NCBI GenBank assembly: GCA_038496445.1
Contig: JALMLS010000228.1
Location: forward strand, 248,001 to 312,000
DNA length: 64,000 bases
Origin: Trichosphaerium sp. ATCC 40318
Taxonomy: Eukaryota > Protista > Tubulinea
Reading direction: 5' to 3'
A program made the position numbers and the translations under genes. Positions within the stretch are counted from its first letter, which is position 1; each line of letters begins with the position of its first letter. The notes beneath the pieces are model-generated. The model saw only the letters and a program-made list of their open reading frames with translations, ran no database searches and had not been told where the DNA came from. Shown here one piece after another: positions 18,501-64,000 of the stretch.

Positions 18501-18867
18501 CCTTTACAAATAGCCAAAGCCTTCTTTTCGTTCATCTACAATAACGTCAGAACGAGGAGAAATTAAACTGTTATGTTAATTTGTTTACGACCTTGTACTC
18601 GCGAGCAATATCGTAAGCGCATACTTCGTCATCCTCCGACGTTGTTTCTGTCTTTGAGGTTTTTTTCAAATTGGGTACAGATGTAGACCGTGCTATTGAT
18701 CGCCTACGCCGTGATGGTTCTTCCGTAGGCTCAGGATCGCTTTCACGCGATATAGGAGGACGTTGTGTTACAGTTAGTGTTGTAGCCCTTTGCCTACGCC
18801 GTGTGGGTGGTTGAACAGACACAGCCTTGCGCACGGGTACTGGTTCGTCATAAGTCGTTTCGCTCAT
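15519..18867 (-). CDS. C2-like + LNS2/PITP (lipin/Nir2-type HAD) domain protein
   Basis: AVVFDIDGTLT, GYVPIYLSGR, WLRNRGFPPG, FK, IYAGYGNTATDFKAY are LNS2 motifs. An upstream C2-like region ends GTVNIKLEF. Confidence 0.8.
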
Positions 18868-19110
18868 GACGAATACAAAATTGTATGTTCATAAAATGAC
18901 TTATTAACGTTTCTCCGGTTGATCACACTCAAAACGAATGGCCCATAGCAAAACACATATAACCAAAACAAACATTTTGAGCGAAACTTATTGCTTCTCT
19001 ACAAGTAAACCAAACTACATCATACGCTCACCTGAACATCTACGAAGCTATTGAGGTGTATGTAGCGCATAAAAACAGATGCACATGCGAAAATACCTCC
19101 TACCTTGATT

Positions 19111-22100
19111 TTACTCATCGGGTACACTTTGCCTTGCCTTTTTTTGTGGTGGCACATAAACGTGCTCGATAACGGCATCATTTGAATCGCTTAGCCTCCT
19201 TTTCTTTCCTTGTACTTCCTCTCGCTCTTCTATTACCCAGTCACCAGCTTCAGCATCTTGACTAGAATATCGTTTAGTAACTACAAACTCACACTTTTGT
19301 AAAGAGAAGCGTACCTGTACTCGTCTTCAGAATCACTTGTGACTTGTATGCTTGTGTCGAATTCATCGATATCCTAGCATTAGATTTAAGCTAAGCGCGT
19401 CTACAACAGAGTGTATACAAATCAAGTGTCAACGTACCTCAGAATCGCTATCATCAGACAAGTTTGTCCATCGTTGTGGCTTGGATTGATTTTTAAATAC
19501 ACCTGCAGCGTCCGAGGTCCATAAAGGCTCATACAGATCATCAATACAATCATCACCGTCAACAGTACGTGTGAGCCTCTTTGTCACTGCGTTCTCAACA
19601 AGTTCTTCACTGTGTTTGTAGTTAATAACCGAATGGATTTTGTACGAATAAGAGGTACCTCTTAAAAGAAATAGATACATCCTGAGTGAAGTCAGAAATG
19701 AATTCGTTGAAAGAAGCCAATACAAGAGTCAATTTAGGGACTGATCGAAATTCACTCGCAAAATTCGAGTTGAGCTCACGTGATGACTTTAATCTTTGTG
19801 ACAGGATATAAAGCATACGTAGTAGAGAATCTGAATCAACTAAAAGTGAAAGAAGATTCACATCTGTCTTTGCTTTTGACTCGTTTTTTTTTATGTATTT
19901 TTCTAATTTTGTTTTCAGTCTTGGAATAAATTTGGAGCCTATAGAAAAGACAACCGCAAAAGAAGCCCTTAAATAATAAGCTTAGTATATATAAGAGTGT
20001 TTTAGAATAGTATAAAGTACATACTTGTTCGGTATATCCAAATCAGAAACGAGATAATCAAGAGTTATCATTACCCATTCATAAAAAAGTAGAACAATTT
20101 TTTTTAATCCTTCAGCATCAACTGAACTATATCGTAATAATGCATGTAACAGCGCAGTTCCTGTTTTTTGAATAAATATATACATTGTATAATCGTTCAT
20201 TTGCTTCAACTCTGTAGGCTCTTCTGGACTATAAAATCACAAAGTCAGCTTCACAGCGTACAAAGAAAGTGTTCAGAAACTTACGCTTCTAGGTAGCACC
20301 GAAACAAGTATAAAAAATCAGATATACAATCAACAAGTCTGTTACTCGGTGTTAGGGTGAATAACGTGAATAACACATAGTTGTGAAAGAAATAAGGAGC
20401 TCCTAGAGTGATTGTATGCCATCTACATATAGAATTCGTCTTTGCATACCTGTTGGATTATGTAAGAAAGAAATCGTCATATTTGAAAAAAGGTACACGC
20501 ACTCAATCGCAGCTGCCTGTCTCACAACATTTGCTGACTCACTATCTGTATCTGGATACACACTTTTAGATGCATTAGTATTAATATAAACCAAGAGGTA
20601 GGAGTTACCGTGAAAGTATGTTGTAACACAAAAGCGCAACATCAGCTGATTTCCTCAAGTGAGACGTCAAGTGTTTTATAACCATTATCAATGTTGCTGC
20701 AACATTTCTGCTTCTTGTCTTAACGAGTTGAGAAAACAACTCACAGAATATTTCATCATAAGTTAATCGTATATCGTGAATACTCTAAACAGAAAGTAAA
20801 AATCACGTGTTCGAAAGCACCAAACGATTTTCGTACCGAATCGAAAAACTCATCATTAGTACAAGCATAAATGACATCTTTGAATGTTTCATTCTTTTGT
20901 TTTGAGATGAATATGATATGAGCCAAAGATAAGTATATATGTGTTAGTATCTGTGTGCATGCACTGTATTCTTCCTTTAGATCATGAACTGAATCTTTTC
21001 GCTTCTAAAAATATGTTTGGATCAAGATAAGAAAAAAACAAGAAAACTTAGTAACTTCTCAGCCTGAGCGAAAATTTACTTTGATGAGCTCATAGCAGAG
21101 ATTATAGATGGCCAATAATGGGTTTATAAAATTGTAGTGTAGGATCGTACCATTGCCTTCTCGTGAGACAGTAATTGTCGTATCTCTTTAGTTGCTGAAG
21201 ATACAACTTTCGAAAGTGAAAATAGATGTTTAATGGTCCCTGACCTTCTTATACTATATAAAAAGTAATTCCAGTAAACACCCTGTTCATCGTTTGCATA
21301 GATACGAAAATTACGACAAATTCTATGCATCAATAATGGAGCAAATGTGTTGGCTTCATTTCCTTTTCCAACAGTCTTTTTCTTAGCAAGTTGAGTTCTA
21401 GAATTTGTTGTTAATACGAGAGAATACAATGTTTTAGTATGTACGTACTTAATAGGTAGGAAGTGAGATACATAGCCATAAAGTGCTTCTACAATATCCA
21501 GAAAAGCAGCAAAGTCAAAATCTTCATCTCCAGCCTCTTGTTTTTTATTGAATAAAGCCAAACCAGAAATAACAAGTGGTATATCTAAGGAAGTCGCAGT
21601 CTTCAATAACATCTTCAGATATGAAAACATCCTCTCCCTATAGTATATTTCTAAGAATAGCGAACAAATAAAACCCGAAGTTGGGTAGGAAAGAAAGCAA
21701 CGCACCCAATATGAACCTTGATAAGTTTTGCGAAGTTCATATATTTCTTCTTAAATGAAGTTGCATTAGACAAAACATGCATTAGACAATCCTCGTAGAT
21801 TGAATCTTCATCATTACTTCTATTTTTATGATCACGTGCTAGAAAATTTGCCATTGTAATACATAAAGCATGGTAATGAAGCATTGAGTACAGATGAATG
21901 AAAACTGTAACTTGAGTCAATTATTAGAGTTAAATTAATGCGTACTCTGTTTTTTGTTGGATTCAAAAGCATTCACATCTTGCAATGGTTGAATTAGATC
22001 TTCTACATTTGATACAACTTGGAATTGAGCTTTCAAAACACTTTCAATACTCTCCGACTTAAACCAAAAGCGTTAATACAGTTCCAAAATAACCTGATAG

Positions 22101-57253: not shown

Positions 57254-58319
57254 TTATTTTCTTAAATTCCCACAATATTCGCTTGAAGCGTTTGTTACAT
57301 TTGTATTATAAACACAACACGTGCCAACACCCTTCAAATGTTTAATGCCTTCATCAGTGATATTCTTGCAATTGTTTCCAGAAAAGGTTTTGACGCCTGC
57401 AATGTGTTTCAAGCCTTCATCAGTTACCTCAGTATCGTTTACACTGATAAACTCAGCTCCAGCAATAAAAGGCATACCAACATCAGTTATCTTTGTATTA
57501 TTTAGCTCAATATGCCTGACACCCTTGAAATGTTCCAACGCAGCATCAGTGACATTTGTATCGTTCAAATGAATCACCTTGGCTCCTTTTAAGTACTTAG
57601 CACATGCGTCAGTAACCAATGTGTTCGAGATATTAATATATTCTACTCCCTTGAGGTACTTGATTCCGCTATCTGTGATCACTGTAGATGAAATATCAAT
57701 AACCTTAACACCTTCAACATACGACAAAGCTTCATCATTCAGTGTTTGCGAAAAAGGTGCATAAAAGGATTTAACACCTTTGAAGTATTGAAATTGATCA
57801 GGGGAGCTCGGACTGCATCTAGCAAAAAAACTGTCAAAAATGGCGCCAATTAAACTTTATTTTCACTGAAATTAATGACGAGTATAACTAAAATTAGTTT
57901 CAGTTGTGTAAAAAAGACTGTTACCTTGAGAAGTCTATATGTTTCACTCCCGTAAGGTACTTAACGAGTTCTTCTTGTTCATACCAATACGAAGATAAAA
58001 CAACTCTTGTATGGCGTACAACGCCGGGATACTTCATAATACGTTGTGCTTGCTCCTCTGTGGTTATTATTATGCGATCATACCCTAACCTCTCCCGTAT
58101 CATCTCCGCACACGCTCTACACGTAGCAGCTACATCAACACGCGTAATTCCATGCGTATAAGAAATAATATTGTCTACAACAAACAATGGTAAAGCATCT
58201 AAAAGTACAATGTTGGAATCGCCTGTCAGAAGCGGAAAATCGTCTGTAGTTGGTTTTTGCCTCAACGGCTTTATAGGCAGCGGTTTGTGTGGGGGAAATC
58301 TACCCTTGCTATTACCCAT
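57254..58319 (-). CDS. F-box + 21-aa LRR protein, one intron (~57820-57925)
   Basis: LLDALPLFVVDNIISY...ATCR F-box-like; GVKxIxLxxTxITDxGxKxLK repeats. Confidence 0.85.
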
Positions 58320-59252: not shown

Positions 59253-62200
59253 ATGACAATAAAAGGCTTATTAAATAAGTTAAAATTACCTTCATGTAGA
59301 GACGTTTTATTGGTTTTAATTTACCTGACAGTTATATAGGCAATATTCGCCTATTTAAAGGTCAAATAGTCGGTATTGACGCTCAAGGATGGCTATACAA
59401 GGGTGCCAGCAAATGTACCATGGATTTATTATTGAACAGGCGCACAACAACGTACGCGTAAGTACTAGTACCTAATAATAACATTTTGTGCTAGATATGT
59501 GACATACGTTATAAATCGCGTTCAGGAACTCATTGACTGTGGTATTAAGCCTATACTGGTATTCGACGGCGCATCTCTGAAAGCCAAGGATCAAATAAAC
59601 GCAGCTAGGAGGAGGTGAACCTAATCTGTACAAATATACAAACTAATCAGCTCAAGGCACCGTAACAAGCATAAAAACCTAGCACTTGAGTACTACAGGC
59701 ACAGGGATTTTCAAAGAGCAGAAAGCCACAGCCGAGAGGCATTACGAGTAACATCAGCAATGGTAGAGCAAACAATAGCAGTAAGAATTTTCTTCTTCCT
59801 CTGAGAGACAAGATCGATTAAATACTCTCTATAGGCCGTAAAAAAGCTTGGAGTACATTGCTTAGTAGCACCATATGAAGCAGACGCACAATTAGCGTTT
59901 TTAGAGAGCATAGGACATATATCTGCAATAATTACTGAAGATTCTGATCTTATCGCTTTTGGATGCAACACTGTACGTCATCTAGGTCGTTTTTACATTC
60001 AAACTATTGCTTATCATCGTAATAAATACTCTCTAGATTATATACAAGCTACGCCCTTCAGGTATCTGTTTGCTATACCAGCGTGGTAGAGTGGAAAGTA
60101 CCTTTAAACTTGGAGGAATCAAAACTTTCACAAAAGAAATGTTACTTCATATGTGTATCTTAGCAGGCTGTGATTACTTGCCTAATATCCCTGGTATTGG
60201 TATACAAAGAGCTCATCTTTTTATGCAACGTAATGGAGATATTTGGGGAGCTATAGATGATATCATTGATAACGATTGGCCTGTGCCTAATGGTTACTTT
60301 AGAAGAGCTGAAAAGGCAGAAATGTCTTTTCTTTACCAACGTGTATTTGATCCACGCTCTAAAACAGTTGTCCACATGAAGTAAGAACACTTATTATTGT
60401 TTAATATAGCTTATGTTTATATCTCAGGAAACTACCTAGAGGTGTAAACCCTAGGGACTACGCGGTGGGACCTCATATTGAACCGGGGCATGCTCAAAAA
60501 ATTTGTTTGGGTGGATCCTTCTCACTAGTGAAAGTAAGAAAAATCTGAGACTTTTAGATGGCTAATTTATGGCTTTTTTATTAGGTCGACATCAAGAACG
60601 TAGAAGTAAACGCATCTGACCTACGTAAGAGAATAGTTTTTAATCAAGAATTATCTTCAATTGACACGTGAGAATTATTTAGAGAGAGAAAAGGGAAGAC
60701 AAGAAATTTCTGAGATAGTGTTTGAGAAAATGAAGGAAGGCCAAGTAGGACGTACGCTATGGTTTTGAACCAACACGCTGCTTTAGGAATCCTTATTGAT
60801 TTGTTTTATTTAGGAACTGCGTACACAGTGAAGAATAATTCCACGCGAAGCAGAAGGTTCAAGGTATTTATCTTACCGGGAGGTTTCAGCGGATACAAAG
60901 TTGAGGTTCCTCTAAAGGTACATCTCGTCATGCTTCTTTTCTGACGCAGTACAGGGTAAATATGTTAGCTTAAATCCTGGGAAGACGTATAAAGGAATAG
61001 TAAGCATAACAGCACCTCTAAACACGTATGGAGAGTTTCGCTGTGTAATCATATTTCACTTTGGAGGTTTTGTGATTGGTCGCTTTGCAAGCACCCTTGT
61101 AGTTGTACGTTAGAGAATTTCGAAATAATACGTCCTCTTACAAGTCTTTAAAGGACGCAGAAGGTGTTATTGATGGTATGAGACCTAAAACACCGTATAA
61201 GAAGCGGCCAACCCCAAAAAGACCTAAAGGAAAAGTTGTCCGTGCTCCATTTTCACGTGCAGATTTTGCAAAGCAGTTCAAGCACAAGCTTCCTCCGTAC
61301 CCTATTCCAAAGCCATTGGATGCTATACTTTCTTGTAAATCGGCAGATGATGTTCATAGACGCCTACAAGAAGGTCCTTGGCTTGAAGGATATGTACCAA
61401 AAATGCAAACTCTGCTGTGGATTGAAGAGGTACTCTCCTTTTGTTTATCAAACCAGCTTTGAATTATACCTACCTTCCACAAACCTTTTTATTGCTAAAT
61501 CTATAAAAAATCCGTCTGTTAGTAAACTACAACATTCAAGTTTTGAAAGCCAACAATTATTGTATTTCTTTTCTTTTTTCACATTTTGAGTAGGTCCAAG
61601 CGTGTACTGATATTCGTCATTACGATATGGAAGGAGTAAGACTTCAAGGTGGAGGAAACGGTGGTTACTTACGATTGAGAGTACCCGGATTAGCAGAAAA
61701 AAGACCATCTCTTCTTTACGGTGATTCTGTTTTTGTAACACTTGGAGGTAATCAAACAAACACGTGATCTGTCCCTATTTTGATAAGAAAGGAATTAATG
61801 ATAAACAGAATTAAACTAACTTGTTTCTGTTAAACCAGGTGATGATAGACAATGGGAAGGACGTGTTCATCAAGTAGAATTATCAAGTGTGATGCTTAAG
61901 TTTGCCAGAAGGTTTCATGAATTATATGTAAATGGCATGCCTTGTAATGTCCGTTTCACTTTTTCTCGAACGCCTTTAAAGAAGATGCATAATGCAGTAT
62001 CTCTTTTCGAAGTACGTCTGTTGCAAAAAAGAAGAAAACCCAAAAAAAAAGAAAAAAAGAAGAAAAAAAAGGAACTCTTCACTTCTCCAGAACTTATTTA
62101 TTTCTAGAACGAACCACCTGCATGGGAAGTTAAAAATAACTACCCAAATGACCTTGTGCTGAAGTATAGGATTGCTTTTTACAATCCAAGAATCGGACAA

Positions 62201-63920
62201 AACCCAAGCCAACAAGTATGAATTCTTTTGGGTTTTTGTAAGCGTTATTTATCACTCATTGTTTTTGTAGCGAGCTATTATTGGTGTACTTAGTCATAAT
62301 TCGAAACTCCCTTATGTTATTTTTGGTCCACCTGGTACAGGTAAAACTGTAACAGTCGTAGAGGCTGTGAAACAAATGTACAACAAGGCACGTGTCAGTA
62401 CATCTTTCGCTCTAACTGTTCATGTTGCTGCGATGTTACACCTCCAACCTGAGGTTACTGTACTCTACTTACGTCTGATATTTTTATTAAACAGAAACAA
62501 ACTGTTCTTGTTGTTGCTCCCTCTAACAGTGCCGCTGATCTTCTGGTGGAACGCTTAGGGCATGGTTAGTTAATATCTAGCTCATCTTTTCTGTTTTTTC
62601 CTGATATCCTTTTTTAGGAGGGCCTATTCCTCGTACTCAGTTGTTTAGATTGAATGCGTATAGTAGGAACCCAAGAGAGGTATCAGATATTGTTAAGAAG
62701 CACTCTATTATTGGAGACAATGATCGGTTTGCTATGCCAACTTTAGCTCAATTAAAAACAAAACGTGTTGTCGTATCAACTGTTGTATCAGCCGGCTACG
62801 TTTATTCATTGGGGATTGAAAAAGGTACGCGGAGCAAACCCCAAGACATCTTCTAATAACTTGATCCACCACATCGTATTTTTTTCTTGTTTTTTCAGGA
62901 AACGTCTTTTTTCGTAAGTGAACGATTGCTCTTTACTAATTTCTCTACTTATAAGGGTTTTACGACTGTGTAGTAGTAGATGAAGCAGGTCAAGCAACCG
63001 AACCTGAGCTGCTTATAGCAGCATCTTGCGCCGGACCAAAAACAAAACTAGTACTTGCAGGTGATCCAAAACAACTCGGTACAAAATTTCAACTAAATCA
63101 TTATGTGCCTCACTAATCGCTAAAAGGTCCTATCATCCGTTCTAAGATTGCTGTAAGCTATGATTTGCACGTGAGTCTTCTTGAAAGGCTTCACAACATA
63201 GAGCCTTACAAGTATGTCGATAACGGAGATGTCGGAACTTATTGCAATGGCTATAACAAGAACTTCATTACAAAGCTCACTTATAACTATCGATCTCATC
63301 CTACTCTTCTTAAAGTACCTTCTGCTTTATTCTACAATAATCTTTTGGAACCAAAAGCAGATCCTCTAAGGACAACTTGTTTAATGAATTTTGAGAAATT
63401 ACCAAATAACAAAATTCCTTTCATCTTTCATGGTTGTGTTCATGGGTACGTTTTCAATAAAATTATTTATCACAGCGAATGCCTAGTGTTTAAGCTAGTA
63501 AAATAGGGTAGTATCATATCTTTTATGATACATCTCTTTCTGATGAAGCATCGTTTCTTTTTTTTTTCTTAATTTGTTTGTTTCGTTTTCTCGATCTAAT
63601 TTTTTGCTTGTTTAGTAAGGATGAGAGGGAAGGTAATAGCCCTTCTTGGTTCAATGCTTTTGAAGCTAAACTAGTATTTCAATACATACAAGCACTATCT
63701 TTCATGAGAAAGAACAGACCAAGAATGGAAGAAATCGGTACACATAGTGGTTGTTCTTTTGCTAGCGTAGTGCTTTTCTTTTGCATTTTTATGTCATTGA
63801 CACGCGTATTTTTACATAGGTGTTATTGCTCCATACAATAAACAAGCAAAGAAGATACGTGATGTGTTATACGCATCTGGATATGAAGGCGTAACTGTTG
63901 GACCTGTGGAAATCTTCCAG
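59253..63920 (+). CDS. EXO1/XPG-family nuclease fused to a MOV10/SDE3-type SF1 RNA helicase (continues past window end)
   Basis: Nuclease: [61 protein letters not shown]. Helicase: [76 protein letters not shown]. Linker exons are open and in phase. Confidence 0.82.
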
Positions 63921-64000
63921 GTACACTTTTTTATTTTTGTTTATTGAAAATCACAACTTTTTTTTGGTCAATGCTTGCTTTATGCTATGTTTGGTTTTTT

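Follow-up and report, generated by a model that had tools for sequence, protein, structure and literature searches.

RESULTS

Structure of the gene

The stretch of DNA analysed here (the window) comprises 64 000 nucleotides (nt) from the amoeba Trichosphaerium sp. ATCC 40318 (GenBank assembly GCA_038496445.1, contig JALMLS010000228.1, positions 248 001 to 312 000 of the forward strand). In our numbering of the source assembly (70.3 Mb, 642 contigs) the window is G000:C16:248001-312000. At its 3′ end, on the plus strand, it carries a gene in which the catalytic core of an EXO1-type 5′ nuclease is followed, in the same reading frame, by a MOV10-type helicase of superfamily 1B (SF1B), and we consider it likely that this is one gene producing one polypeptide. 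A fusion of EXO1 and MOV10 at this place had been proposed in a preliminary description made from the letters of the window. It is borne out by an in-frame chain of exons, by RNA from which intron 8, in the linker between the two halves, has been removed, and by a paralog on another contig, C63, with the same order of domains.

The gene model was built from three-frame translation, reading of splice sites and RNA contigs. It has 24 exons and codes for 1162 amino acids, and its full spliced translation is an open frame with a single terminal stop. The coding sequence opens with ATG 59253 and closes with TAA 64655-64657 in continued window numbering (G000:C16:312655-312657); the stop codon, 657 nt past the window end, was read on the same contig. 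The end of the gene at 63920, as first described, has to be given up: the exon in question extends to 63921 and the gene continues to 64657. The introns are 37-279 nt long. One of them, 62388-62494, has GC-AG ends (GCACGT...AAACAG) and is seen in a spliced RNA contig, while the remaining introns are all of the GT-AG type; the last intron was picked by homology with the C63 paralog.

Exons 1-7 (59253-59295, 59340-59451, 59495-59614, 59657-59780, 59835-59972, 60037-60380 and 60428-60533) encode amino acids 1-329, the EXO1-type catalytic core. The linker starts with exon 8 (60585-60624; 40 nt, phase 0 to 1, amino acids 330-343). It is followed by intron 8 (60625-60682; 58 nt, GTAAGA...TTTAG), which holds an in-frame TGA at 60669-60671 and is absent from spliced RNA, and by exon 9 (60683-60751; 69 nt, phase 1 to 1, amino acids 343-366), in which ATG 60730 is Met359, internal in the fused frame. 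Intron 9 (60752-60813; 62 nt, GTACGC...TTTAG) is predicted from the requirement of the frame and from an intron of C63 at the same place and in the same phase; its GTACG donor type recurs at least four more times in the gene.

Exons 10-12 (60814-60917, 60955-61104 and 61154-61429; amino acids 366-542) encode a putative MOV10-type immunoglobulin-like (Ig-like) domain and a basic segment after it, and exons 13-14 (61594-61747 and 61839-62011; amino acids 543-651) the MOV-10 beta-barrel (1B). The first RecA-like domain is encoded by exons 15-19 (62108-63078; amino acids 652-860) and the first part of the second by exons 20-22 (63127-63921; amino acids 860-1041); the junctions of exons 13-22 are found in RNA. 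The window closes within intron 22 (63922-64000), beyond which follow exons 64201-64428 and 64518-64657.

The frame is open from exon 8 into exon 9, and all exons listed in the preliminary description from 60428 on are in phase. Those at 60428-60533, 60585-60624, 60683-60751 and 60814-60917 stand as given there, and the exon opening at 60955, which had been ended at about 61071, is extended to 61104. Among the early exons, RNA corrected two boundaries, to 59451>59495 and 59614>59657.

RNA evidence for splicing

No sequencing run recorded as RNA contains this stretch. The contigs of run X3, however, lack every intron that they cover, so that X3 is in practice a transcriptome. X3 contig 8 (659 nt) joins 59835-59972, 60037-60380, 60428-60533 and 60585-60624 and then continues with 12 letters, AGAGAGAAAAGG. 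These are exactly 60683-60694 and occur once in 71.5 kb, both strands counted, whereas an unspliced continuation after 60624 would read GTAAGAGAATAG. Since the end of the contig is this unique sequence, intron 8 with its TGA at 60669 has been spliced out and the frame continues. RNA across 60624-60683, singled out at the outset as the place to look, is thus spliced, and the scenario that had been set against the fusion, with transcripts ending at the TGA at 60669 and the helicase starting independently at ATG 60730, does not hold for at least one form of the transcript.

The helicase half is covered by X3 contig 9 (2337 nt), which begins at 60891, shows the junction 60917>60955 and 11 later junctions within the window (61104>61154 included), and passes the donor at 63921 into the letters that open the next exon at 64201, outside the window. 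Junctions 59451>59495 and 59614>59657 are seen in contigs of run X1. Altogether, at least 15 of the 23 junctions of the gene are seen directly in spliced RNA contigs of X3 and X1.

Between the genome and the contigs of X3 and X1, 11 distinct variant sites are listed, eight of them synonymous; such mostly synonymous strain variation lends weak support to a constrained coding sequence. The differences are unevenly spread between the X3 contigs: over 59835-60624, 10 of 628 positions differ from the genome, while over 60891-63921 the 2337-nt contig has zero differences in the listed pieces. This contrast may reflect a mosaic haplotype, a sweep or distinct transcript pools.

Around the linker, ATG 60759 opens an open reading frame (ORF), 60759-60944, that crosses the whole of predicted intron 9 and enters the Ig-like exon in its phase. 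A stop at 60766-60768, which the upstream frame would meet if intron 9 were retained, overlaps this ORF.

The nuclease half

Residues 1 to ~335 make a complete EXO1-type catalytic core. With single exons as queries, Pfam gave XPG_N at 29.5 bits (cut-off 22) and XPG_I at 55.2 bits (cut-off 24.9). The top match among solved structures (PDB) is human EXO1 (E-value 4.8e-11), with FEN1 at 7.6e-07, and in BLASTp residues 1-345 align with residues 1-348 of full-length EXO1s at 36-40% identity. The fused nuclease is ~40% identical to the genome's own EXO1 and 29% identical to its FEN1.

The acidic catalytic motifs had been called intact, and we agree: all seven acidic residues matching D30, D78, E150, D152, D171, D173 and D225 of human EXO1, as listed in PMC5499597, are present in the translation. 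Human K85 and R92 likewise have their Lys and Arg counterparts in the window copy. The nuclease core is apparently active. The long C-terminal regulatory tail of EXO1 is absent, as had been noted before, the chain running into MOV10-type domains after about residue 335.

The helicase half

The MOV-10_beta-barrel family (PF21634) is matched by exons 13 and 14 with 44.9 and 36.2 bits (cut-off 23.6). The assignment of the downstream part to superfamily 1 likewise stands, with its motifs intact and both AAA_11 and AAA_12 above their Pfam cut-offs: AAA_11 scores 49.1 bits within exons 15-19, and AAA_12 scores 27.8 bits within exons 20-22 and 54.5 bits on the piece 64203-64427. In the first RecA-like domain, motif I (GPPGTGKT), motif Ia, motif II (DEAG) and motif III can be read from the translation; motif VI (NVAITRA) is intact and the LGFLKNPKRFNVAITRA segment is also present. 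The top solved-structure match of the C-terminal helicase exon is UPF1.

The Ig-like domain is less sharply outlined. Scanned singly, the window exons gave no Pfam match to MOV-10_Ig-like, while the C63 counterpart of exon 11 scored 25.7 bits, just under the cut-off of 27.4, over positions 75-125 of the 126 positions of the profile. Since this match begins at position 75, the start of the domain would lie some 74 residues before it, within exons 8-9 and ahead of ATG 60730; a helicase translated from Met359 would therefore lose ~30 residues of the domain.

A diverged paralog on contig C63

The second copy lies at G000:C63:5285-10259, on the minus strand. It has 28 exons, an intact frame and 1158 amino acids in the same nuclease-to-helicase order, its XPG_I match lying ~1.7 kb upstream of its MOV-10 beta-barrel match on the same strand, as in the window. 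Overall the two proteins are 46% identical, with 37% in the nuclease, 22% in the linker, 35% in the Ig-like domain, 53% in the beta-barrel and 57% in the helicase core; over the region of exons 10-12 (Ig-like domain and basic segment) identity is 35-42%.

The exons that bridge the two halves are comparable in spite of this divergence. The phase 0 to 1 exon measures 40 nt in the window and 55 nt in C63, and both copies then have a 69-nt exon of phase 1 to 1 and a 104-nt exon ending in phase 0. The 69-nt exon of C63 contains no ATG, and its next in-frame Met is inside the Ig-like domain; the methionines at the boundary, Met359 in the window and Met339 in C63, are not equivalent. An open, phase-matched bridge in two copies so diverged would be hard to explain unless it is translated. 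The fusion architecture appears to predate the duplication that gave rise to the two copies and, as these are now only 46% identical, to have persisted over a long period.

In a tree of 59 nuclease domains, 55 of them full-length matches that all aligned from residue 1 as EXO1, both fused copies appear as long branches among the EXO1s, with weak support within the group. Constraining the two copies to stand together was not rejected (p-AU of 0.85 in the approximately unbiased test) and gave a tree whose score exceeded that of the free search by 29 log units. The constrained tree is in keeping with a fusion older than the duplication, although long-branch effects are possible; the tree is poorly resolved and does not place the origin of the fusion within the history of EXO1.

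Other family members and neighbouring genes

A profile search of the contigs found XPG_I matches at four loci in the genome and XPG_N matches at the same four. Separate genes of both families, which the preliminary description had proposed to look for, were found. The canonical EXO1 gene (G000:C1:~632900-634700, minus strand) has a long, low-complexity C-terminal tail rich in Ser, Pro and Lys, and is 51% identical to a fungal EXO1. A more distant, stand-alone MOV10-like helicase (G000:C102:~18800-21300, plus strand) is 28-40% identical and has a beta-barrel region; there is no nuclease within 6.8 kb upstream of it. The genome also has a FEN1 gene, on contig C5, and another UPF1-like helicase at G000:C13:~550200-551900. 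Since a canonical EXO1 is kept, the fused copies are added, specialised genes and not a replacement.

At G000:C213:16901-16978 there is an isolated stretch of 24 amino acids that is 87% identical to the beta-barrel motif. No further part of the fused gene was found in the 16 kb of C213:10000-25999, and the stretch may be a gene fragment or relic.

Upstream of the fused gene the window carries two ORFs on the minus strand, a leucine-rich-repeat ORF at 57254-57727 and an ORF of 132 amino acids at 57921-58319. As these neighbours are on the opposite strand, the fused gene has an upstream region of its own (~930 nt) and follows no gene on the same strand. We also considered an operon, or trans-splicing, of two tightly packed genes, as in a compact genome of the Oikopleura type; this was rejected, as the RNA shows cis-splicing across the gap.

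Search for fused relatives

In a HMMER search with nuclease exon 6 against 1.84 billion representatives, 1558 matches were obtained, and none of the best 150 had a helicase part. The top ranks were 40-42% identical to the query, and none of the 150 listed exceeded 51%. When a plant EXO1 (P0102) served as a long query in a word-index search, only plant EXO1s came back, this being a poor query and uninformative on fusions; a query of exon size gave no match. Two metagenome scans, one with an alignment of the beta-barrel and one with an alignment of the C-terminal helicase part, found no relative, and the ESM Atlas yielded XPG fragments only, or nothing. All these are weak negatives, because the genome's own proteins are absent from the libraries in question. 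A literature search found no paper on a fusion of EXO1 or XPG to MOV10, Armitage or SDE3.

Alternative explanations

Several observations weigh against a single polypeptide that both cuts and unwinds. The evidence for the fused product is at the level of DNA and RNA. No RNA contig covers 60695-60890, which leaves junction 60751>60814 to prediction, and retention of intron 9 would put the stop at 60766-60768 into the fused frame. In X3 the nuclease part has a contig depth of 8.4 and the helicase part one of 25; such depths gauge transcript level poorly, but the gap could reflect additional, helicase-only transcripts. In the C63 nuclease two metal-ligand positions are changed, E150 to D and D171 to S, the latter directly preceded by a D. 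No fused relative in another organism was found in the libraries searched, in a lineage that is barely sampled.

Some of these points would fit two separate products, namely an EXO1-like protein that ends at TGA 60669 with intron 8 retained and a helicase that starts at ATG 60730 or ATG 60759, the read-through RNA being a minor by-product of tight gene packing. The in-frame stop 45 nt into intron 8, the ATG in exon 9, the ORF that crosses predicted intron 9 in frame with the Ig-like exon, the 3-fold higher depth over the helicase and the gap in RNA coverage could all be read in this way. On the other side, the sole RNA contig that reaches intron 8 has it spliced out, C63 keeps open, in-phase linker exons with no ATG in its exon 9, two open and phase-matched 69-nt exons in such diverged copies are not readily a matter of chance, and by profile arithmetic a start at Met359 would truncate the Ig-like domain. 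We regard two separate products as very unlikely. Somewhat less so is an arrangement that is compatible with the fused protein, in which the latter is made together with a helicase-only isoform from an internal promoter or an alternative start. It would account for the difference in depth and would make use of Met359, present in the window copy. Still, 3′ bias gives the same picture in a measure that is unreliable anyway, the RNA contig data contain no detectable transcript start for the gene, and the Met is not conserved in C63; on balance we take this arrangement to be a minority option, if a serious one.

The fusion could also be real and its nuclease unable to cut, serving the helicase as a head that binds nucleic-acid ends or flaps. 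The nuclease domains of both fused copies sit on long branches and reach no more than 41% identity with any EXO1, and the two substitutions in C63 would suit such a role, but the window copy keeps the seven acidic residues together with the Lys and Arg at the positions of K85 and R92, and the strain variation is mostly synonymous. A non-cutting head is in our estimate unlikely. Finally, a chimeric contig of unrelated genes, that is, an artefact of assembly or annotation, is hardly credible: independent RNA contigs of other runs show the same exon order, and so does the diverged second locus. A single gene that encodes an EXO1-type core joined to a MOV10-type helicase is therefore the reading that we prefer.

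DISCUSSION

Comparison with known systems

The C-terminal tail of EXO1 carries sites for mismatch-repair partners. With EXO1 (human structures 3QEA and 5V07) the fused protein shares XPG_N, XPG_I, the seven acidic residues and the GCDYL...GIG helix-two-turn-helix, and its residues ~1-345 correspond almost exactly to the crystallised core (1-352). It differs in that a helicase stands in place of the tail, in an identity of only 36-41% and in its long branch.

MOV10, Armitage and SDE3 are UPF1-like SF1B 5′-3′ RNA helicases of silencing and retroelement control, and Zucchini/PLD6 is a separate nuclease that works with Armitage and MOV10L1. The fused protein has in common with MOV10, MOV10L1, Armitage and SDE3 the beta-barrel, AAA_11, AAA_12, motifs I, II (DEAG) and VI and the LGFLKNPKRFNVAITRA segment; for the Ig-like domain there is a near-threshold profile match in the paralog. 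Members of the MOV10 family have an N-terminal domain of their own and separate nucleases, whereas in the fused protein the putative Ig-like domain is preceded by an EXO1 core in covalent linkage. MOV10 binds RNASEH2, and depletion of either lets L1 RNA-DNA hybrids accumulate (PMC5829647). EXO1 cuts DNA 5′ ends and flaps and removes RNA primers from hybrids (PMC5499597).

In general design the protein is reminiscent of DNA2, which also has, in one chain, an N-terminal 5′-processing nuclease and then a UPF1-like SF1B 5′-3′ motor. DNA2 is an enzyme of end resection and of Okazaki-fragment processing, and in effect it is a nuclease tethered to a translocase. Its nuclease, however, is of the PD-(D/E)XK type with an iron-sulphur cluster, while that of the fused protein is XPG/FEN-type by both Pfam and PDB matches, and DNA2 lacks the MOV10 Ig-like and beta-barrel signatures. 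The resemblance is one of design, not descent, and the fused protein is an analogue of DNA2, not a member of its family. HELZ2, PhoH2 and Cas3 also unite motor and nuclease in a single protein but differ in nuclease family, motor family and domain order; to our knowledge, none of them pairs XPG_N/XPG_I with a MOV10-type helicase. In PhoH2, a PIN-like nuclease (of the XPG/FEN superfamily) is coupled to an RNA helicase-like ATPase (PMC5499597). What we describe is thus a new domain architecture; both of the families that it joins are well known, and single-chain helicase-nucleases are a known theme.

Possible function

In the arrangement that we consider likely, the EXO1 core stands where a MOV10-type SF1B helicase has its own N-terminal domain. 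The helicase part would bind a 5′ single-stranded tail of RNA or DNA and move 5′ to 3′, as motors of the MOV10/UPF1 type do, opening duplexes or RNA:DNA hybrids and clearing bound proteins, while the tethered nuclease would trim 5′ ends, flaps or the RNA strand of the hybrid. Motor and nuclease would thus act together on 5′-tailed substrates. One chain would then unite what pairs of a helicase and a nuclease, MOV10 and RNase H2 for instance, do as separate proteins.

Of the possible roles, one in the control of retroelements or in RNA silencing, suggested by what the relatives of the two halves do, seems the likeliest, though we put it at less than an even chance. With a similar confidence, the two fused genes may represent an undescribed class of effector in amoebae, a single-chain 5′ nuclease plus 5′-3′ RNA helicase that destroys RNA:DNA intermediates of retroelements or processes precursors of silencing RNAs, and on which selection has acted from a time before the two copies arose in an ancient duplication.

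Helicases of the MOV10 family have a central part in RNA silencing, piRNA production and retroelement restriction, and their coupling to nucleases is still debated. If the proposal is true, one amoeba protein would do what animals do with MOV10 and RNase H2, or with Armitage and Zucchini. The natural fusion points to the kind of nuclease activity that is usefully tied to a MOV10 motor, one directed at a 5′ end, a flap or the RNA strand of a hybrid, and a single recombinant protein would allow helicase-nuclease coupling to be studied. The fused protein would also be a convergent counterpart of DNA2 derived from unrelated nuclease stock, and as such bears on the recurrent pairing of 5′-3′ SF1B motors with 5′-processing nucleases.

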